From positions 9,052,001 through 9,116,000 of the forward strand of contig OU015568.1 of the NCBI GenBank assembly GCA_907165135.1: a DNA stretch of 64,000 bases, written 5' to 3'. A program made the translations under genes and the position numbers. Source of the DNA: Oikopleura dioica. Lineage: Eukaryota; Animalia; Chordata. This document shows positions 872 to 55,527 of this stretch, one piece after another (position 1 is the first letter of the stretch; the number at the start of each line of letters is the position of its first letter). The notes beneath the pieces are model-generated. The model saw nothing but the letters and a program-made list of their open reading frames with translations. It was not told the DNA's origin and searched no databases.

Positions 872-3800
872 ATGGTTATTCAAGCGAATGGAATCGATTA
901 TCACGCTATTGAGATACAACTGGACAATACCATCTTTTCAAGTACAGTGTTTCTCTTGGATTTTTGGCTAAATGATGATTTCTAGAGGAAAAAATAGAGA
1001 ACACTCCATCGCGAGAAGACGGAATCGACGAAGAAACAGAAATTGATTTACGAAAAATCGGAGCGGAGTTGATTCAAAAAGCCGGGATTTACCTCGATTT
1101 ACCGCAAGTAGCAATCGCCTGCGCTCAAGTTATTTTCCAGCGATTCTACTTTACGAAAAGTTTGGTCACGTGTGATGTTTGCGTCGCGGCAAAAGCCTCC
1201 ATATGGCTCGCCTCGAAGATCGAAGAAGACGTCCGGCGGCCACGTGACGTGATAAACGTCTTCCATATGTTGGAGCAGCAGCGGCTTGGAAAACCCTGCA
1301 TCCCGATGGTCTTCGATCAAAAAGGCTTGAAAGTCTATCACGAGATCAAAAAAGACTTGATAAAAATGGAACACAAGATCCTTGCCGAAGACGATTTCAA
1401 ATAACTCGTTCAAAAATTTTTTTTAACACACCCTTTTTTTGTGCTCATTTGAAAGAGCGTGAAAAACTGGTCCAGAAAATGCTGGTCTTATCATCGGTGA
1501 CGTCACGAGTGGCGCGCGGGCGCCCCCTAAAGGTCTAATTAGGTCAATTGCGGGCTACGCGATTTCTCCGGTCATGCATATCGCACATGCATGGTTAGCA
1601 TCTAGAATTGATCGTCGTGAGCAGGGCTACATGCCCCGGCCAAAATCGTCAAAATCGGACCACGTCTTCACCAGCTGGTTGACCGGCAAATATCTCAAAA
1701 TGACAAAATCACTTACTTTTGATAAAGGCAACCTACCGATGGAAGTAGGGGGTGGCCCCGGACTCGAGCCCGAGTTACTGCCGTATTCGGCCACTTAGTG
1801 CCGGAGGACCTCCCGGAGGACTCCTCTGCTGGAAGAAAAGCTGCTGGAAGACTTATATTGAAAAATATAAATACAAATAAAATTTAAAGCCATGATTGGC
1901 TAGTAATTGCCGTATTCAGCCACTAAGTGCCGGAGGACCTCCCGGAGGACCTCTCTGCTGGAAGAAAAGCTGCTGGAAGACCAATTTTTAAAAATAAAAA
2001 TACAAATATAAAGCCTGGATTGGCTAAATATAGTCTAATTTGCCGCATTTGGCCACTTTCTGCCGGATGACCTCCCGGAGGACCCGCCTACTAAAAACCG
2101 ACTGCTGGTAAGCCAATATTAAAAAAAAAGAATAAATAAAAAGCCTTGCCACATCTGGCAAAACTCGATCACTTTAGTTCATACGCCAGTTCATACTTTT
2201 CAATCAGACTCAAAGCGAAGCCGACTCGAAGGGAAGGCCACGCCCGTTCATTCTTTTCAATCAGAGTCAGGGCGAAGCCGACCCGAAGGGGAGGCCACGC
2301 CCGTTCATTTTTTTAAATCAGATTAAGGGCGAAGCCGACCCGAAGGGGAGGCCGATCCCGTTCATTCTTTTCAATCAGAGTAAATACTAAGCCGACCCGA
2401 AGGGGAGGCCGCGCCCGTTCATTCTTTTCAATCAGAGTCAGGGCGAAGCCGACCCGAAGGGGAGGCCACGCCCATTCATTCTTTGCAATCAGAGTAAGGG
2501 CGAAGCCGACCCGAAGGGAAGGCCACGCCCGTTCATTTTATTAAATCAGATTAAGGGCGAAGCCGACCCGAAGGAAGGCCAATCCCGTTCATTCTTTTCA
2601 ATCAGAGTAAATACGAAGCCGACCCGAAGGGGAGGCCGCGCCGTTCATTCTTTTCAATCAGAGTCAGGGCGAAGCCGACCCGAAGGGGAGGCCAAGCCCA
2701 TTCATTCTTTGCAATCAAAGTAAGGGCGAAGCCGACCCGAAGGAAGGCCACGCCCGTTCATTTTATTAAATCAGATTGAGGGCGAAGCCGACCCGAAGGG
2801 AGGCCAAGCCCATTCATTCTTTGCAATCAGATTAAGGGCGAAGCCGACCCGAAGGGGAGGCCAATCCCGTTCATTCTTTTAATCAGAGAAATAACGAAGC
2901 CGACCCGAAGAGGAGGCCGCGCCCGTTCATTCCTTTCAATCAGAGTCTGGGCGAAGCCGACCCGAAGGGATGGCAACGTCTAATCATTTTATTCAATAAG
3001 AGTCAATGCGAATTGGATTGAAGCCCTTAATCGCCCTTAATCTGATTTAAAAGAATAAACGGGCGTCTGGCACTAAGTGGCTGAATACGGCAATAACAAG
3101 CCAATCATGGCTTTAAATTTTATTTTTATTTATATATTTTAATATAAGTCTTTCAGCAGCTTTTTATTCACCAGAAGAGCTTCGGGTCGGCTTCGCCCTT
3201 ACTCTGATTGAAAAGAATGAATGGGCTTGGCCTCCCCTTCGGGTCGGCTTCGCCCTGACTCTGACTGAAAAGAATGAACGGGCGTTGCCTACCCTTCGGG
3301 TCGGCTTCGCCCTGACTCTGATTGAAAAGAATGAACGGGCGCGGCCTCCCTTCGGGTCGGCTTCGTATGTACTCTGATTGAAAAGAATGAACGGGATTGG
3401 CCTCCCTTCGGGTCGGCTACGCCCTTAATCTGATTTAAAAAAATGAACGGGCGTGGCCTTCCCTTCGGGTCGGCTTCGCCCTGACTCTGATTGAAAAGAA
3501 TGACGGGCGCGGCCTCCCCTTCGGGTCGGCTTCGTATTTACTCTGATTGAAAAGAATGAACGGGATTGGCCTCCCCTTCGGGTCGGCTTCGCCCTAAATC
3601 TGATTTAATAAAATGAACGGGCGTGGCCTCCCCTTCGGGTCGGCTTCGCCCTGACTCTGATTGAAAAGAATGAACGGGCGTGGCCTTCCCTTCGAGTCGG
3701 CTTCGCTTTGAGTCTGATTGAAAAGTATGAACTGGCGTATGAACTAAAGTGATCGAGTTATGCCAGATGTCGCAAGGCTTTTTATTTATTCTTTTTTTTT

Positions 3801-6174
3801 AAATATTGGCTTACCAGCAGTCGGTTTTTTAGTAGGCGGGTCCTCCGGGAGGTCATCCGGCAGAAAGTGGCCAAATGCGGCATATTCGACTATATTTAGC
3901 CAATCCAGGCTTTATATTTGTATTTTTATTTTTAAAAATTGGTCTTCCAGCAGCTTTTCTTCCAGCAGAGGGGTCCTCCGGCACTTAGTGGCTGAATACG
4001 GCAATTACTAGCCAATCATGGCTTTAAATTTTATTTGTATTTATATTTTTCAATATTAGTCTTCCAGCAGCTTTTCTTCCAGCAGAGGAGTCCTCCGGGA
4101 GGTCCTCCGGCACTAAGTGGCCGAATACGGCAGTAACTCGGGCTCGAGTCCGGGGCCACCCCTACTTCCATCGGTAGGTTGCCTTTATCAAAAGTAAGTG
4201 ATTTTGTCATTTTGAGATATTTGCCGGTCAACCAGCTGGTGAAGACGTGGTCCGATTTTGACGATTTTGGCCGGGACATGTAGCCCTGCTCACGACGATC
4301 AATTCTAGATGCTAACCATGCATGTGCGATATGCATGACCGGAGAAATCGCGTAGCCCGCAATTGACCTAATTAGACCTTTAGGGGCGCCCGCGCGCCAC
4401 TCGTGACGTCACCGATGATAAGACCAGCATTTTCTGGACCAGTTTTTCACGCTCTTTCAAATGAGCACAAAAAAAGGGGGTGTTAGAAAAAATTTTTGAA
4501 CGAGTTATTTGAAATCGTCGAACTTGGCTTCTGCGTCCACGTGCAGCACCCTCACAAGATCATAATTATGTATCTGAATATGATCTACAAAACCGAGAGG
4601 AACAAAGAAAATCTCGTTCAGGAAAGTGGTTTAAATCATCTTCCTCCTTTGTTTTTGTGAGCTCGTGGGTATCAAAGTATTTTTAAAGAGCTCAAAGGAG
4701 CGTGCAAAAAGTTTTCAGAGTACTAAAGCTTATTTACTTCCGTGAATTTCTGTAGATAAGAGCCTAAGAGTTATTTAAATAAGTTGTCTTAAAAGGAACA
4801 CCAGCCAGTTATCTAAGGGGAAAACCGTGTTACTCGGGTAATTTTCCTTGTTGCCTTCAATTTTTAAAACCGCGATGCTCAGACTGCCTGGAACTACATG
4901 AATGATTCATTTCGAACTACTCTCTTTTGCGAGTATCAACCGGAAGTGATCGCCTGTGCTTGCATCTTTCTGGCCGCTCGGATGCTCAAAATCCCGCTGC
5001 CCGGGTCAGATGAAGAGACCGAGCCCAAACAGTGGTACGAACTGTACGATGCGAAAACGGAAGATGTTGAAGCGATCGCGATAAGGATTTTGCAGCTTTA
5101 TACGAATCCTACTGTAAGTGAGCAAAAAGAGTAAGATTGAGATGTAATTCTAGAGGTCTTTTGATGAGCTGATGGAAAAAGTGAAGCAACTGCAAGAAAT
5201 CAAAAAGAAACAGCTGAAAAAACTCAACGCCAGTTCGCAAGATTTAGACTCGCCCTTGGCCAGTGGTCAAAACAGTCCAGGTAAAAGTTGTCCTCGGAAG
5301 ACAGTCCTGCCATTTTACGTCAGATTAATCCTTTATCTGAGACAAATAGACTCCGTTTTTAATTTGCAAGGGGAAAAAGTAGAGAGGAATTTGATCGATC
5401 ATCTATATTTTATCGTCTCTTGACCGAGCCAGCTGACGATATTTAAATTAAATTTGTATCAAGATCATTTTATCGTATCACGGGCCTCTGTTTTTGTTTT
5501 ATTTCGCATTCCTCGAATACCTTGCTAGAAATTTTTTATGAGGCAGAGTCAGTCTCTAGTCATCCCGCGCTTGAAATTTGGCATGCTCGTTAGTTTTTTC
5601 TCGATTCTCAAGGTCATTTAAAAATGAGCAAATCCACTCATCTAAATCATGTGATCAATTAATGCTTTCATATTTGCCAAGGTCGTTATTTAATTAATTG
5701 ATTTTTATGTTTACGATGAATTTTATAGCTGCTGATTCACCAAATATCGAACAAGCGGTTACCAAGAACTCGTAAGTGCCCAAAGAAACAGTAATGAACT
5801 GTCGAGTAACTGATAAATTTGAAGGCCAAAGCGAAAAAGAACACGAACGAGATCGAGATCACGTGATTCTCGTCATCGCCACGAGAAGAAAGATCGACGA
5901 GATCGGGATAGGAAAAAGAGCCGAGATGCTTCTGATAGGGATCGTGAAAGAAGAAGGGATAGGGATCGACGAAGAAGCAAGGATAGAAAGCGCAGATCGT
6001 AAGTCCAAAAATCAAAGCGATTCCGAACGTTCCCTTATCACTGCTTGCATATCAAGGGGATTATGTAACATGCTGTTGAATTTGAATTTTAGGCGCTCGC
6101 GAACGAGGTCCAAATCCAATTCTCGCGATAAAGAGCGAAGGCGAGAGCGGCGATCGGACCGCGAACGGAAATAG
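872..6174 (+). CDS. CCNL1: Cyclin L (cyclin boxes + RS domain), interrupted by a foldback insertion at 1390-4519
   Basis: [56 protein letters not shown]|[42 protein letters not shown], then Arg/Ser/Asp-rich exons ending TAG 6174. ATG 872 directly follows tttag. Confidence 0.92.
2210..2995 (+). repeat. ~14 tandem 57-bp units in the foldback left arm
   Basis: GCCGAC recurs at 2277, 2334, 2391, 2448, 2505, 2562... (period 57); unit like GGGCGAAGCCGACCCGAAGGGGAGGCCACGCCCGTTCATTCTTTTCAATCAGAGTCA. Confidence 0.95.
3180..3715 (-). repeat. ~10 tandem 57-bp units, reverse orientation, in the foldback right arm
   Basis: Repeated CTTCGGGTCGGCTTCGCCCTGACTCTGATTGAAAAGAATGAACGGGCG, the reverse complement of the left array. 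Confidence 0.95.
4622..4882 (+). other. Non-canonical GA-AG intron in cyclin L
   Basis: CTC GTT CAG|GAAAGT...CTCAG|ACT GCC TGG restores the conserved [11 protein letters not shown] without indel. Confidence 0.8.
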
Positions 6175-7002
6175 AAAATCACCGGAAGAGGAAATAGAAA
6201 TAGCGAAAATCGCGAAATGCGCCTGTGAATACACGATCGACCGCGCGCCACTATCCCTTAATTGACCACTTCTCATCTTACCGAATCTCGTGTGCAAAAG
6301 AGCTTTAATCTCTCCAATCTTTGTCCATTGCGTATTTTGTGTATGTCTTGCGGTTCGGCCATTATCAACCGGGGCGAATTGATATTTCGCAAATGCGGTA
6401 TCTCCCAATTCCAATCAACTTTAGGAGAAAAGAAAAAAAACCACAGCCTCAAGGTCTGCTATCGCGTTATTTTCCGGCCACGAAACAGAGACCCGCACCT
6501 GTGGGAAATCGCAGCGGGGATCATTTGACTCCGCGCCGGGACTTAGCAATTACAAATTTAGATTTTTCATCCCCTGCTTTGTTCGCCCCTGCGGCTTTCC
6601 TGGGAATTTATGACCGCCGTTTTTCCAGGATTATCGGATTAGTCCTTGTTGATTTCCAAATAGTTCAATAGAAAACAGTGCATTTTTTCTGAAATCTTGA
6701 AAATTTTGCTCATTTATTTGGCCTTTTTCCATTATTTCTCCCTCCGTTACTCTCGTAAATTATGTCTGTGATCCGCTTCGCGTATTGGCCGGGAAAAATA
6801 TAAATTTTTCGCCTTCGAACAGCCATAGCTCACGTTATACTTTATGAAACCAAGGGATGAAGGTATCTTTCGAAAGCTCAGAATCTGAGGATTGGGGGAA
6901 CGTAAAAATCATTTCGGAAAATCGACATTTCTGATTGGCCGAAAATTTGAAATAATTATTTTTGCCAGTCAACATCAACTTTTTTCAAATGTTTTTTCGG
7001 GG

Positions 7003-7273
7003 ACGCTCGTCTAAATTACCAAAGATTTTTGGTAATGCATTACCAAAAATTGGTAATCCATTACCAAACTTTTTTCATAAGTTCTGATTTTTTGTCCAAA
7101 AAATGAGTAAATCACTCCCAAACGTTTTCTATCACACAGGCGCGGAGCGCACAAGGGCTCTTTGACTAAACAAAATTGGCACTTTTCGGGAAGTTTGGTA
7201 ATGCATTACAAAAAATTGGTAATGGATTACCAAAATTGGTAATGCATTACCAATTGGTAATTTAGACGAGCGT
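7003..7273. mobile_element. ~270-bp MITE-like inverted-repeat element with palindromic sub-repeats
   Basis: ACGCTCGTCTAAATTACCAA at 7003 and TTGGTAATTTAGACGAGCGT ending 7273; internal TTGGTAATGCATTACCAA-type palindromes in both arms; TSD not resolved. Confidence 0.75.
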
Positions 7274-8141
7274 TTCCCTGTTTTTTCTTTCCTCCAATCC
7301 TCAGAAACTGAGCTTTTTAAAAATGTATCAATCACGTGATTTCATCATCTCTAACGTGAGATATGGCAGTTCGTAGGAAATTCATAAAAATGCTCTCAGA
7401 ATCGCCCCAGGCAATGAAAAGAAGTTTTTTCCAGGTGATTTCTAGGTTTTCGATGATGACTAAAACGATCAACATAATGATTTTCCCCCTAGTTGAAATT
7501 TTTGTCAAAATCGAAAATTTATATTTTTTCCGACCATTCTACTCGTGAGAGTCCATTCTTGGAATTGAATATTATTTTTGAACGTATGCCCAGTAGGCCG
7601 AGCGGCTTTCTTGGCACGTAACTCTAGCTTACAATTACCGTCTTTTTCAGTTTTAATCTCGTGGATAAATAATCGTGTTCCGTCGTTGAAGATCTTTGTG
7701 TATTTATTTTTAGCGCCCTTTCTACCGTTTTCTCACAAAAAGAAAATCACCGATATTCAAGTGGATACGCAGCTGTACGTGCCTATACGCGTATGTCTAA
7801 AAAATAAACCCTGTATCATCCCTTTTTTGAGCTTCAACTTTCATTCACCAGTTTCAGTGAAGCGCCAAGTGCGCGCGCGTGCGCCGCACTACGAGCATGG
7901 CGCTAAACTGAAACCAAAAATTTAAAACTCAAAAAAGATTGAGAAAAATAATGTGAAGACAAGCTTGTCAAAAAGAAGCAAAATAACTTGACAAGTTATA
8001 TCAACAACTCAAAATTTGAACTTCACCTTTTTTAAATAAAAAAACTGCCAGTATATTGAAAAATACGAAAAAAACAAAGAAAGAGATTAAAGAAGAAATC
8101 CGAAAATGGGGTATTTTCAGTGTCGGTCTCCTCCTCGCCAA

Positions 8142-11100
8142 ATGGCGTCGGATGGAGGAGAGAAAATGTTCGATCCGGTGCTGTTCGACGTCACCAGAAT
8201 TCCAGCAGATGATATAGCGACACAGATTACAAAGGAAGATTTTGAAGTGTTTCAGAATATCCGCCCGGACGAGGTAAGAACAAATTATCGTTTTGAATCG
8301 TTTATCGTGCGTTACATCCTTATTTTTTGGCCAATTTGCGCACTTTCTAATGAGCACAAGAAAGGGGGGTGCTAGGATTTCGAATCTCAACTCCTTATTG
8401 AAATTGGCCTTTGCCATTTTTGGTCGACTTAAGGGGGCTGGGTAAAGGCATGCTTGATTTTTGTTTATTTTAGAAGCAATTTTGGATAAGGAAGAGCTGC
8501 TTCCTTTTTCCCTTTCGAAATTAACCTTGAACCGTGTTCTTTTCCTAGAGCGGAAGTATAAACGACTCTAGTAAAACACATAAACCTATCTTGAGCGTGG
8601 CACCTTTTTGGAGCCCCGCATGAGAGCATGAACTTTTTGGCGAAGTCTTAATTTATTATTTTCTGCGCAAACGTTGTCTTGGAGCAAAGAATCGCATTGA
8701 TCCCGTCTCAATGGGGTGTGACGCCTTTCAGTGCGCCGCTTTGTTCTTTATGAATGGCCCTGTTCATCGTCAACCCCTTTTTTTTTACTTTTGACGCGCG
8801 AAGAGTTAATGGAATTAAATCAATACTTCCTTTCACGTCAAAAGCTCTTCTTGTTGTTATTTTTGCTTATTCAGTTAGTCTTTCTTAGCTTAGCTTGCCT
8901 TAGTTAGGTTTTTTTCGACCAATCAAAATGGCCAAAAAAGACTTTCGGCTTATCGGAAACCGGAATAAAGTAAAGATCTTCGGGCCATATTTATAATAAG
9001 ATAAGACCCAGCGTCTTTTTTGGAGAAAGAACAGACTCTAAGACCCGCTTTTACAACTGACTTCATGGCTCAACTTAATTTTATAGCCTATAAATGCAAT
9101 TATGATGTTCTTTAGCCGGTGTTTTCACACGTGAGCGCTCATCATATTAGTGGAAAAGGGACTCGTTGATTCAGAATTTATGATCATCAGTGGCTCGTTA
9201 TCATCAATACACATGTGCATCAATAATGATCCTATTTTGGTCTTTTGAACTTTGGGCGCGTGTCTAATGAACGGGCCGAAATCAAAGTCAGAATCGATCC
9301 CTCCCATCTGCCGGAGTGGTAATAAACTTAGAACAGATCATGTGACCTTTATTTCCACAAATCGATAAATGTCTCGCCACGCGGTCACGGTTCGTTAGTA
9401 CAGTAGTAGCCGTGCTTCCACGAAATTGAAAGGACGCAGCCGACAGACCTTGTTTATGGTTATCTTTTTTATGGCTTTCGCTACTAATAAAAATGAAATT
9501 TGTATTTTTGAGGAATCACCTGTCGATCAGTGAGTGGTTTATTAGAGCGTATCGCGTGTCTGCCAATTTCGCTGATGAGCTAATTATTAGATGCTTTTTT
9601 AGAAAACATATACAGTAAGGGGTTGCTATTTCCAGGCTTATCTTAAAATTTATTCTTTGTTGATATTATAAATATTTTATTACAATAAAAATGATGCCTT
9701 TATGAAGACAAATGACAGTTTTATAAGTCGCGGGATTATTGATCGCATTGTTGCCCTGTTGACGGACTAATGAGGTTACTAACACATTGTTATTTATTTT
9801 TCACCTTCGTGTACCCGCTCGCAAAAATATTTACGCTTTTGGTTTCAGTTGACCTGTGTCGGATGGAGCGGGCGCAACAAACAGGAGCTATCCCCCAACG
9901 TGGTCGAAATGACGCAGCGCTTCAACAGGACTTCTTTCTGGGCCATCTCGGTGATCTTACAGACGCAAAACTTGAAACTACGAGTGGAAGTGCTTACACA
10001 GTTCATTCGCATCGCCAGGCGACTTCACGACTTTTCAAACTACCACGGAATGTTGGCGATCATAAGCGCGCTCAGACACGTTGCAATTGACCGGCTAACC
10101 GATACGTGGTCGAGGATCTCAAGAGCCGACAGGAAACACTTCGAAGTCCTGTCTAAATTTGTTCCAGAAGGTGACGGGCACCAGCTTTTGAGGGAAAAAT
10201 TCGAGGCGATCCAGCTTCCCTGTATACCGCACTTGGGCTTGTTTCTCAAAGAACTGACGTACATCGACGTAGCGAATCCGATCGTCAACGGAATTGAGCC
10301 AGAAAGCAGAGTTATGAAAATGAACAATATTTTACGTCTCATCAGGTAAACTGACTGAAATCAACAACAAATCACTCCAGACTTATTTGAGCTAGCTTTA
10401 TATTTCATTTTCATTTTCAGCGAGTTTCAAATGAGCGACTACTCGGATTTGCCAAGTCTACCTTACATACAATCCTACTTGAAAAGTTTCGACTACATCA
10501 GCGAGCTGCAGCGCTTCTTGGAAGACGACAATTACAAGGTTTGTCTATTGAACGCAGCTGAATTATTAATTGGCCTAATGAGCGGATCTTCCCACAATTG
10601 AGCTGCCCAAAAACTAATAATCATTACCGCCCAACGGTTCTCAGGTTCGCAAATTTATATCTCTTCTTCAGCAAAGTTACGAGCTCCAGCCCAAATTTGA
10701 TAAAAAGTCGAAGAAGTTCGGGACAATGGACGACTTGAACAATCCCGCGCCGCGAAATTCAGTCACTTCTCGCTTCACCCGTGGTCACAGAAGAACAGTC
10801 TCCCTCGGCCGCTCCCCCAGACACAATCACGAGCTTTTGAGTACAGAACACCAGCCTACAGTGAGTTTGCTGGATGATCATCCATTGAGTCAATCTTCCT
10901 CGCCGGGGAGCATCAATGGCGTGCGAAATAGTTTGCCCGGAAATGGAATTAGCTGTATGCGCTTTACGAGAAGGAACGGGATAGAAATATATTTGCGCGG
11001 CAAATTTGACGAATGATGAGGGGGCTTCCCCGATTTTATTTTTCCATAAGGCTCGTTAAATATTTTTGTACCCGGAAACAAAGCCTCCGTCCTCAGCCCA

Positions 11101-29449: not shown

Positions 29450-30053
29450 GGGTGTCAACATCGATTTGATAAATTGTTGGACTCATAAGAGATACCCTTA
29501 CTAAATCGATGTTGACACCCTATACGGGAGGTGTACAATTTTTGTCGATTTCGGGATATAATCGCCAGCCAAATGGAACCGGTGAATCGAAATGACCTGA
29601 AAACTCTAATGAGTATTTGTGCACTCCTTACACACCTTTCCGCAAAATTTCAACGTGATAACCCACGCGAGCACTGCACAAGTACCGTTTTTCTCACCTC
29701 CACCCTCGCGCTCCGAGGAAAGAAAAAAACTGACAGCATTTTTTGGAGATCCCTAAGGTCTTGTTTAGATATTATTTATAGGTTTTCAAGTATGTAGAAT
29801 TTGAAAATCATACTTTCAGAGTGGTATCATGAATATTTAATAAAAAAATGACATAATGATATTATGAAAAGAGCAAATTCTAGCACTAAATCTTTAGTTT
29901 TCGAAAAATCTAAAAGTGCAGTTTAAAAGAGAATATTCGTTTTAGTATAATCTGAAATTTTCAGAAGATTATCTCAAAAGAAAGGCCAAATCGACAAAAA
30001 TTGTACACCTCCCGTAAGGGGGTTCTTTAGGCGGGCTCCCGTATAGGGGTTAA
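29450..30053. mobile_element. Composite of nested/abutting inverted-repeat (MITE-like) elements
   Basis: 18-bp IR GGGTGTCAACATCGATTT 29450-29467/29503-29520; 29-bp IR TACGGGAGGTGTACAATTTTTGTCGATTT 29523-29551/29988-30016; extra CTCCCGTATAGGGGTTAA at 30036-30053. Confidence 0.7.
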
Positions 30054-31614: not shown

Positions 31615-31831
31615 AAGGGTCCCAAGATAGGACTAGGGTCGGCTATCTGTGTAGAAAACCTGAGTCAGGTTAGGGTTAGGGTTAGGTTAGAAAATTAGAA
31701 AAGATTGAAATTATAACAGTTTAAATCAATAAAATTCTTGCGAAGCCGCTTTGATCTTCAGACTCTGACTCAGGTTTTCTACACAGGTTGCCGACCACGG
31801 ACATAAATTTCCTAGCCCTTATCCGACCCTT
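31615..31831. mobile_element. Hairpin MITE-like element containing a (TTAGGG)-like run
   Basis: Arms GGTCGGCTATCTGTGTAGAAAACCTGAGTCAG / CTGACTCAGGTTTTCTACACAGGTTGCCGACC plus outer GGGTC..GATAGGACTAGG / CCTAGCCCTTATCCGACCC; GGTTAGGGTTAGGGTTAGGTTAG inside. Confidence 0.7.
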
Positions 31832-32674: not shown

Positions 32675-32838
32675 CTTGGCTCGGCAACCTGTGTCCAAAA
32701 CCTGACTCAGGGCTTGAAATTTCATTCGAGCTCTTTCTGGCCCTGACTCAGGTTTTGGACACAGGTTGCCAAGCCAAGAACTTTTGGAGTCCCTAACTCT
32801 AACTTTAATCCTAACCGGGAAAGGCTAACCCTAACCAA
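32675..32838. mobile_element. Second copy of the same hairpin family, followed by a degenerate (CCCTAA)-like run
   Basis: CTTGGCTCGGCAACCTGTGTCCAAAACCTGACTCAGGGC...GCCCTGACTCAGGTTTTGGACACAGGTTGCCAAGCCAAG (32675-32778), then CCCTAACTCTAACTTTAATCCTAACC..GCTAACCCTAACC. Confidence 0.7.
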
Positions 32839-36680: not shown

Positions 36681-37303
36681 GATGATTTCAAAAAACTTTT
36701 TGTGGGGCCGGAAATCGGAAAAAATCTGTAAGTGCAGTTTTCTTCAGCTCGTCAAGACGAGTTGAATGATGGGTCTTACTCCTGGTAAATCTAAGGATTT
36801 ACCGGTTTACCGGCTGGTTACCGGAAAATACGTTGTCACCCGCCGTTTTTGTTCTAGAAGTGGTAAACAGATGATCGACCCAGGAAATTGTTCCTTATAG
36901 TCAGATCTCCTCTAGGCTCAAAGATGAGGCTCGTATCAATACTCTGAAGAGAGTTATCAGTAAAAACAGTAAATTTTACGTACATTTTGTTGTTGCTGCA
37001 CGTTCCTGATTTTCAGTCCCATTTCTGATAACTCTCTTCAGAGTATTGATACGAGCCTCATCTTTGAGCCTAGAGGAGATCTGACTATAAGGAACGATTT
37101 CCTGGGTCGATCATCTGTTTACCACTTCTAGAACAAAAACGGCGGGTGACAACGTATTTTCCGGTAACCAGCCGGTAAACCGGTAAATCCTTAGATTTAC
37201 CAGAGGTTAGACCCATCATTCAACTCGTCTCGACGAGCTGAAGAAAACTGCACTCACAGATTTTTTACGATTTCCGGCCCCACAAAAGTTTTTTGAAATC
37301 ATC
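36681..37303. mobile_element. 623-bp palindromic MITE/foldback with ~280-bp arms; 3-bp TSD TCT
   Basis: Starts GATGATTTCAAAAAACTT, ends AAGTTTTTTGAAATCATC; arms near-identical across ~36681-36960 / 37025-37303; TCT at 36678-36680 and 37304-37306. Confidence 0.93.
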
Positions 37304-53107: not shown

Positions 53108-55527
53108 ATGTATCGAGCAACTGTGGGAACGGGCAAGACGTTACTCGGTACTTTGCCTTTTACAGCTCAAATGGTGAACTTGCGGAAAAATCGTGATTTT
53201 ACGAAAATTGAAGATTTACGATGGTTATCTCCAAAAGTACAAATGTGAGAAGAACAGTAAATTGACGGAAGTGGAGAACTTCATGCGCTGTGAGAATTTT
53301 CTCCATGGAGGTAGAAAAAACCCCAACGAATAGTTTCCCCAAATCTTTGTTTTAGTAGTTGAAATTCCAGAAATTGCAAAAAGCGAGCGAATCTACCGTC
53401 ACGAAGCTGGTCATCTTCTCATTATACTCCTTCATTTTGAGTCTCTTTCCGTCTTTCCAGCCCTCGTCTCTTTCCAAAAACGCGCAGATCTAAAGCTCAA
53501 CGCTTACATAAAAGTCGTCGATCTCCCAGAAACGGGCAAGAAGACCTCGACTTCTGACGAAGAAAAGTTCAAGAGCTGGATTTTATATTCCGTCGCTGGG
53601 AAAGCCGCGGAAGCAGTATTCAATGGAACTGAAGGAACAACAGTTTATTCCTTATTGAAAAGGCTCCAGGAAAAAACGAATTCACGTGACCTGCAAATTG
53701 CTCGAATGTACGCATCAAAGGTAGATAAAGTTTTATTAAATAGGTTTAAGGCCGGCATAGTATCTTAATTGTTCCCAGCAGCAAAATTGAATCAGAGCAT
53801 ACGGTCCAAGTCGCGCCCATTGAGCAGAAAATCCACGGAAGAATCCCAGCGGCCCATTCGTTTTCAGAATGTAGCTTAGAGCTGGAAACAAACCGTTAAA
53901 CTTCCCAGGGTTGGTCATTATCACAGTTCTGGCATTCGTAAATGGCGAGCTTAAAATGTTCTTTTCATATTTGTTGAAAAAATGTCGCTGAACCTAGAAC
54001 AAGTGATAGCAAAGCCAGTAATAATCGCTGTGCAGAAAATCAGTCCCAATCGCTCAGCCTCGCTTGGTGCAGAATTATGACCGTAATTGTCGTAATCGCT
54101 ATCTTTCCACGAATGTAAAAATGGAAGAAAATTCTGGAGGGAGGACGACTTCATCGAGTTTTGATGATGATCGGGTGTTTTCTTGAGGAAATCTTTGACT
54201 TCGTTGTAGACGGCTACGTAGGTGATTCCAATGCTTTCGTGGGTTAAGTTTTTCCAAATATTGGCGTTGAAACCATTCAAATGTCAACCCTTTTTCCTCA
54301 TTGCTCTAGTAACACTTGTTCCAACACCTTCATAATAATTCGCCCATCTCAATGACACCGTTTGTTTTATATTATCCACCCGTTTTTTGAACCCCTCTAG
54401 AAAAGGGATGAGGACATCCTGAGATTATTTTAACCCCCCTACGCCACAGAATAGACCTTTACCTCTTATTTTAGCTGCATTGAGGCACTGTATGATGTCT
54501 GTACTCCGAGTCCATAGACTCCCCAAAAGGGGTCAAAATGAGCGAAATCGGGTTTTTCCGGCTTAATGACGTCATAAGTCAAAGAACATGTGACAATAAC
54601 TTTTTCTAAGTACCCCTACGCCACAGATCAGACCCTAAGCTACATTCTGGTAGTTTAGGGAACCCTCTGTGATAACTGTGGTCGGAGAGCATAGACTCCC
54701 CAGCTTGGGTTAATATAAAACAAACGGTGTCAATGGACTTCCCCCGACTTCCCTCGCCAGTTTATAAAGCGGTGGTGGTTTTCCTTGATAACCCTGCGCT
54801 CTCACTTTGAAAAGGTCGGTCGGATGCGCTATTGTCGCGGCCAGTCCAGCGGCGGTGGCACCTGCTGCCATTCTCGAAGCAATTCGCTGAATATCGGATT
54901 CCTTGTTGATCCCACGCTCAAATTGCTCCCGGAAGGGTTCATACAAGCCGAGTCGAAGAGATGAGTAGATGAGTTCTCGAGCCAGGGAAGCAGTAATTCC
55001 TCGATACCAGCCAGAAAACCCCTCTTGAACTATGATGTCTTTCATGACAACGGGAAATGGTCGCACTTGCCCGCGATTAGAGATTTGTTGAAAAACCATC
55101 GCAGTTTCAAAGGGCTACAGTCGTTATAGAATTTACTGACAAAATGGGAGATTTACATGGACGCATAATCCAGCAGTTGCGCAGGATACACCCGCTAAGC
55201 CGATGTTCAGGACTTGCTCTTGATTCATCCTTGCGCTACGTCATAACTAGAGAACATTCATTTTCCAAACATCTCTGAAAACTTCGCTGATCTAAATTCT
55301 AGAGAGTCCTCTTAAAAAAAGATTAATTTTAAATTATTCATTTAAAATCTTTATTCTAGCTCTCCGACGACGAAACGAAGCAAGAAGAAATCATCGCTGC
55401 CAGTTTTTATCAAGCAATAAAAGAAATCAAGGCGAACGAAAGAAAATACGAAGTCATCTTGGAAGCTATAAAGAAAAACAGCTTCATCACAGCATCTGAA
55501 ATTTTCAAATTATTCGAAGAGCTTTAA
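53108..55527 (+). CDS. Stand-alone FtsH/M41-type metallopeptidase domain protein (no AAA domain)
   Basis: YRHEAGHL (53400-53414), SVAGKAAEAVFNG, NSRDLQIARMYA|intron 53721-55359|LSDDETKQEEIIAASFYQAIKEIKANERKYEVILEAIKKNSFITASEIFKLFEEL*; exon phases are consistent. Not in the ORF track. Confidence 0.72.
53736..55228 (-). CDS. Mitochondrial carrier (SLC25, UCP/dicarboxylate-like), nested antisense in the M41 gene intron
   Basis: GWYRGITASLARELIYSSLRLGLYEP, IAHPTDLFKVRAQ, GPLGFFRGFSAQWARLGPYALIQFCCWEQLR. Confidence 0.88.
54434..54702. repeat. Two diverged ~90-bp direct repeats in the SLC25 intron
   Basis: ACCCCTACGCCACAGA...CATAGACTCCCC at ~54434-54530 and ~54612-54702. Confidence 0.55.

Follow-up and report, generated by a model that had tools for sequence, protein, structure and literature searches.

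What becomes of a conserved gene when a palindrome of more than three kilobases lies inside one of its coding exons? The question is raised by the cyclin L gene of the tunicate Oikopleura dioica in assembly GCA_907165135.1 (contig OU015568.1, positions 9,052,001 to 9,116,000 of the forward strand), a stretch of 64,000 nucleotides that is called the window throughout and to whose first letter all coordinates refer. An initial annotation, made from the sequence alone, had described a modular foldback element within a cyclin L exon and had proposed that it was either a very recent or haplotype-specific insertion, or one that is removed from the mRNA. Our analysis makes it highly probable that the palindrome is a young, non-autonomous cut-and-paste foldback DNA transposon, and that the allele bearing it is a loss-of-function allele of cyclin L, most likely carried in the heterozygous state. 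What is observed at the locus is a set of inverted ends, a 3-bp duplication, empty sites in relatives, a lack of coding capacity, ends shared with elements elsewhere and host exons without decay. The parts of the locus are as follows.

872-941, plus strand: cyclin L exon 1, with the ATG at 872, placed by tblastn with the Bergen cyclin L P0153
942-985, plus strand: cyclin L intron 1, GT-AG
986-1389, plus strand: cyclin L exon 2, upstream portion, from the N-terminal cyclin box to KILAE
1387-1389, plus strand: target site GAA, left copy
1390-4519, no strand assigned: whole foldback element, non-autonomous, 3,130 bp, ends GACGATTTCAAA
1402-1404, plus strand: in-frame stop TAA met on read-through, closing a 162-residue product annotated as g10956
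4520-4522, plus strand: target site GAA, right copy
4523-4621, plus strand: cyclin L exon 2, downstream portion, LGFCVHV...ENLVQ
4622-4882, plus strand: cyclin L intron, GA-AG, with the non-canonical GA donor CAG/GAAAGT, frame-preserving
4883-6174, plus strand: remaining cyclin L exons and introns, with the C-terminal cyclin box and the RS-rich tail

Comparison with other alleles, which the initial annotation had suggested as a check, was carried out and found the site empty in nine other contigs. Four of these are marine-metagenome contigs (L007-L010) with 92-97% DNA identity to the locus and a single GAA in the context GCC/GCG GAA CTT GGC, and the other five are loci of the Bergen type (L001-L005). 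Because the empty alleles carry one GAA where the window has two, the duplication that splits KILAE from ELGF is exactly 3 bp long, as first described; what looks like a 4-bp repeat, CGAA, arises because the C in front of GAA happens to match. Removal of the element and one GAA does restore the frame, the exon resuming in register as LGFCVHV just as the empty alleles read GAA CTT GGC. Terminal inverted repeats (TIRs), a duplication confirmed by empty sites, relatives sharing the ends and the absence of a transposase gene together identify the insertion as that of a transposon of the TIR type.

The state of the host gene bears on the age of the event. An exon-by-exon comparison over 283 codons with L009, the closest allele, counted 20 synonymous differences, 1 replacement and no stops; for L008 the counts are 42 synonymous differences and 2 replacements. 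The downstream exons, which had been called intact, match the Bergen cyclin L and are free of stops in the exons compared. Since the cyclin L exons show no decay, the insertion is judged young, and the proposal of a very recent event draws support from these exons together with the empty sites in relatives; that the insertion is haplotype-specific is plausible. The two arms may already have differed when the element inserted, and their divergence was therefore not used to estimate its age.

Modular arms and the authenticity of the palindrome

The element is opened at 1390 by GACGATTTCAAATAACTCG and closed at 4519 by the reverse complement of the same sequence, the boundaries first given being exact. 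Each arm is made of a unique terminal domain of ~380 nt, three units of ~129 bp and an array of 57-bp units, arranged around a short centre.

1390-1772, plus strand: left terminal domain, its first 17 nt being the family end GAYGATTTCAAAWAACT and its first 76 nt having 78% identity to the L014 element
1773-2150, plus strand: three ~129-bp sub-repeat copies of the left arm, with AATAAA at 1876, 1993 and 2131
2183-2969, plus strand: left 57-bp array, 13.9 copies, a degenerate final unit reaching ~3012
3013-3179, no strand assigned: centre, with a short spacer, a 57-mer fragment (3031-3066) and a diverged copy of the 129-bp module (3066-3179)
3180-3738, minus strand: right 57-bp array, 9.9 copies
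3739-4519, minus strand: right outer arm, with 129-bp sub-repeats at ~3772-4138 and then the terminal domain

Over ~800 nt the outer arms align with 789 matches, 8 substitutions and 17 gap columns, in agreement with the ~800-bp arms of the initial annotation, and the symmetry takes in the first four units of the 57-bp arrays as well, reaching ~1,030 nt inward (1390-2418 against 3503-4519: 1003 matches, 12 substitutions, five indels of 1 nt and one of 11 nt). The two tandem arrays and the short rearranged centre that had been noticed are likewise present, the centre being assembled from the 57-mer fragment and a 114-nt copy of the arm module (88% identity), both in the orientation of the right arm. 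Two features are added to that first description, namely the ~129-bp sub-repeats in each arm and the fact that the arrays are not mirror images of each other: when the 57-bp units are sorted by type, those on the left follow mostly a four-unit higher-order pattern and those on the right a three-unit one. The palindrome is, as claimed, nearly complete and without a coding spacer. Its longest open reading frame (ORF) measures 101 residues, none of the three ORFs tested has a Pfam match, and no Rfam match was found for the element. The 57-bp unit folds modestly better than its shuffled versions (z about -2.1 to -2.3, 7-9 of 200 shuffles being equally good), which is not taken as evidence of an RNA function. 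A TTTCAA motif stands at the terminus, recurs inverted at about position 60 and is found in many 57-bp units, where it could serve as a secondary transposase site.

A palindrome of this size in a Nanopore-based assembly could in principle have arisen as a fold-back chimera or a mis-joined repeat, and five of the differences between the arms are 1-nt indels, mostly in homopolymers, of a kind that such a reading would accommodate. A chimera would, however, mirror the flank and yield identical arms. Here the flanks are unmirrored, and past the element the exon picks up in register, with a 3-bp duplication in agreement with the empty alleles. Between the arms there are 12 substitutions and one indel of 11 nt, the order of units differs between the arrays, and ends of the same kind with 3-bp duplications occur in marine metagenome contigs from unrelated samples. 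The initial argument from the duplication and the arm mismatches is thereby upheld, and an artefact is considered very improbable.

How a foldback transposon of this shape might have arisen and moved can be outlined. A DDE transposase encoded elsewhere would bind the GAYGATTTCAAA ends and cut the target GAA with a stagger of 3 nt. The arms would grow by tandem duplication of the sub-terminal 129- and 57-bp modules, which perhaps act as extra transposase binding sites, and copying between arms, by analogy with Galileo (PMC3573991), may have extended them and kept them alike, after which the two arrays would have gained and lost units independently.

Fate of the transcript and survival of the allele

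In the Bergen protein Cyclin_N matches residues 29-163, and the insertion point, after E158, lies five residues short of the end of this match. In all 120 aligned cyclin L sequences exactly 31 residues run across the site without an indel, and the residues L, G, C, V, H, H, P, H and K are invariant among them. Cyclin L acts together with CDK11 to drive spliceosome activation (PMC13324802).

Could the coding sequence nonetheless be rescued by splicing, as the initial annotation had allowed? On this account the element would act as a new giant intron, a 3.1-kb hairpin removed either through a weak GA or GC donor at 1384-1393 and an AG at 4503-4504 or 4485-4486 in the right arm, at the cost of 4-13 additional residues, or exactly and non-canonically through pairing of its ends, as in the transposon-derived introns of Fritillaria. 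Some observations favour this account. Non-canonical introns make up ~11% of those in the O. dioica genome (PMC8008620), and introners, known from Micromonas and from the tunicate Fritillaria borealis, typically resemble the element in their 3-bp duplications, inverted ends and exonic position (PMC11282704). We enumerated all GT, GC, GA and GG donors at 1345-1409 with all AG acceptors at 4380-4599, and several stop-free in-frame pairs exist on paper (e.g., donor 1390 with acceptor 4504). No GT donor, however, lies upstream of the stop (1345-1404), and cutting out precisely 3,133 nt would call for CG-GT, GA-TC, AA-CG, AG-GA or GA-AA ends in a species in which ~90% of introns end in AG (bioRxiv 10.1101/2025.08.15.670264). 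GA donors of O. dioica have AG upstream and A downstream (PMC7072748), a combination that no candidate here possesses: GCC/GAAGAC, GAA/GACGAT and GAC/GATTTC all depart from this context, whereas the real donor of the gene at 4622, CAG/GAAAGT, conforms to it. The acceptors are no better, that at 4504 reading GAG and that at 4486 being preceded by a purine run. Pairs from donors 1384-1393 add 4-13 residues or delete at least 7, and donors further upstream replace conserved residues, all within the segment that shows no indel in the 120 cyclin Ls.

Size and annotation point the same way. Families of introners have median lengths of 30-654 nt, so that the element is ~5 times as long as the largest described family median (PMC9860276), the median intron of O. 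dioica measures 49 nt (PMC8008620), and the annotation, made with RNA hints, places no intron across the element. In contrast to introners, neither the ends nor the duplication supplies splice sites, and no fitting splice pair was found. Removal from the mRNA thus finds no support, since exact excision would need ends other than AG and the in-frame routes would use poor sites and alter an indel-free segment. Rescue by splicing is unlikely, and we regard the giant-intron account as improbable. Were it true, the 3-bp-duplication family would represent a giant introner observed while it turns into an intron, in a species with introns of ~49 nt, and the origin of an intron from a large transposon could be followed directly; the sequence evidence points against this.

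If the element is retained, as the transposon interpretation predicts, transcripts of the insertion allele would run into it (GACGATTTC) and meet the TAA at 1402-1404, the stop at 1404 that had been foreseen; the read-through product is KILAE-DDFK-stop. The AATAAA signals at 1876, 1993 and 2131 could also end the transcript early, near 1876-2131. The predicted outcome is either decay of the transcript or a 162-residue protein cut after E158, with neither second cyclin box nor RS tail, and the allele is probably a loss-of-function one on these grounds. Because the element breaks the gene, the annotation of the locus splits cyclin L into two models: an upstream one of 162 residues (Oidioi.mRNA.OKI2018_I69.PAR.g10956.t1) with the C-terminus KILAEDDFK, and a separate one of 236 residues at 4568-6174 that starts with the ATG at 4568. 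A search with the exon part before the element, one of the exon pieces used beside the database proteins P0001 and P0153, led to a cluster of O. dioica cyclin L sequences that includes the upstream model, and the locus of this model on OU015568.1 and the window are identical over 6,404 nt. In the reference genome of a model chordate, a conserved regulator of splicing is represented by a broken copy.

How would such an allele survive? The assembly, the Okinawa reference OKI2018_I69, was made from one male, with merged haplotypes and a heterozygosity of ~3.6% (PMC8008620), and the window belongs to its pseudo-autosomal scaffold. Since the locus is pseudo-autosomal and only one haplotype of two is displayed, survival as a heterozygote is the most likely course, and the allele is probably a recessive null beside an intact allele on the other haplotype. 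This is also the simplest account because no second cyclin L surfaced in a search that was not exhaustive. An alternative is that the null allele is tolerated when homozygous, or even fixed in the line, its function being covered by a second cyclin L or by separately expressed halves of the gene. The RNA was sampled from a laboratory culture of the strain that had reached about generation 30, and the 236-residue model is predicted from its own ATG; the downstream piece, however, has no N-terminal cyclin box, no second O. dioica cyclin L appears among the best 120 of 640 hits (a diverged copy could remain), and the role of cyclin L with CDK11 in spliceosome activation (PMC13324802) also speaks against it. 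Tolerance in the homozygous state is accordingly given little credence, marginally less than the giant intron.

Three points weigh against the interpretation as a transposon-borne, heterozygous null allele: no transposase gene with the family ends was seen, a diverged second cyclin L may lie beyond the best 120 of 640 hits, and O. dioica does use GA donors, including that of cyclin L itself. On balance, our conclusion remains that the foldback insertion is real and young and has probably put one allele of cyclin L out of function.

At 1-941, an ATG16-like gene ends ~150 nt before the cyclin L start, and a T-rich stretch with AG adjoins the ATG, as is also seen in L006 (2737-5533). This arrangement suggests an operon with trans-splicing.

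Relatives of the element and its place among DNA transposons

The element is not alone in the window.

36681-37303, no strand assigned: second family member, a hairpin element of 623 bp that shares the 17-nt end (GATGATTTCAAAAAACT) and is flanked by a TCT duplication

This shorter element lies apparently on a minus-strand 3' splice site whose AG is duplicated, and it appears that it would stay intronic. No contig reaching its site was found by way of the neighbouring SET-domain gene. Separately, a RasGEF intron on the minus strand holds, at 8318-8410, a degenerate relative of the terminal domain (77-79% identity over ~57 nt), an older remnant of the family.

Outside the window, metagenomes were scanned with a degenerate version of the shared 21-nt end, which returned 87 matches, most of them apparently due to chance; the exact 22-nt end gave nothing in the JGI metagenomes. 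A complete member of 256 bp lies, apparently within an intron, at 3626-3881 of L014, with short inverted ends and an AAT duplication; over its first 76 nt it has 76-78% identity with the two ends of the element in cyclin L. Four contigs from four samples (L104-L106 among them) extend to its site, all of them carry the element, identical as far as covered, and no empty site was gained there. We infer that its host is O. dioica from co-occurrence, samples with the same filled site also holding a Bergen-type cyclin L. Four further ends are 76-83% identical to the 623-bp element over 60-88 nt. One of them (L086, 2313-2408) belongs to a TBC1D31 transcript of O. dioica, already spliced, that reads from its 3' untranslated part into a terminus of the family, and the same site is empty in the genomic contig L108 (12456), which is 98-99% identical. 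Because the end is present in one and absent at the same site in the other, the family is polymorphic in a second lineage. The duplications of the complete members are GAA, TCT and AAT, and the one-ended site in L086 is TAA. A possible further end at 1283-1303 of L051 shares the internal CTCATTTGAAA motif, with neither a partner end nor a long ORF in 1.3 kb. Among the other matches, L015 and L065 were rejected as lying in a bacterial-type asparagine-synthetase-like gene, five from viral collections were rejected for showing no similarity past the pattern, and the pattern-scan records L059, L082 and L087, which bear a human-gut label or bare ERZ identifiers, were left out of the analysis.

To which superfamily might such elements belong? 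The 3-bp duplication excludes hAT, whose members duplicate 8 bp, and the sequences GAA, TCT and AAT exclude PIF/Harbinger, whose 3-bp target is TAA/TTA (TWA). For EnSpm/CACTA, Academ and Zator the length of 3 bp would fit, but their ends (CAC, TAG or GG) differ from the GAC/GAT found here. Sola ends begin with GRG/GAG, a likeness to the purine-led G-A end of the present family. Typical Sola2 elements duplicate 4 bp (PMC3627910) and are excluded on that count.

With FB and Tetris of Drosophila and the foldbacks of sea urchins, the element shares modular arms with an outer unique domain, variable internal tandem repeats, a non-coding middle and the absence of a transposase (PMC4079207), and by the same definition (long modular arms, internal tandem repeats, non-coding middle) it is structurally a foldback. 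The comparison with FB/TU-type foldbacks made in the initial annotation therefore stands for the architecture. It does not extend to the duplication, foldback elements being mostly of the Mutator superfamily, whose foldbacks duplicate 8-10 bp (PMC4079207), against 3 bp here, which excludes the Mutator/MULE foldbacks; the nested 129- and 57-bp sub-repeats and a centre built from arm modules are further differences. Galileo, of the P superfamily, offers another parallel in its copies with two or extended TIRs, which have unequal numbers of repeats per arm and arms extended by internal sequence, the repeats having been proposed as secondary transposase binding sites (PMC3573991). P/Galileo elements, however, have a THAP transposase and a 7-8-bp duplication, whereas the element described here has no THAP and duplicates 3 bp, and they are excluded as well.

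According to Repbase, elements with duplications of equal length and at most one mismatch in the first 11 nt belong to the same superfamily (PMC4455052). The cyclin L element, that at 36681-37303 and that in L014 have 3-bp duplications and one mismatch in these 11 nt, and by this rule they are to be placed in one superfamily. The chief new finding is this GAYGATTTCAAAWAACT-ended family, which by its ends and duplications fits none of the superfamily rules tested and ranges from miniature forms (256 and 623 bp) to the 3.1-kb foldback, with 3-bp duplications of variable sequence, in at least two O. dioica lineages. Identification of its transposase would add a branch to the DNA transposons and an active mutagen for the species. 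O. dioica lacks canonical end-joining and its genome is heavily scrambled (PMC11067885), which makes kilobase hairpins candidate break sites.

The window also holds, with no clear duplications at first look, further inverted-repeat pairs that resemble miniature transposons, at 6812-7377, 29518-30021, 31633-31796, 32675-32778 and 54350-54735.

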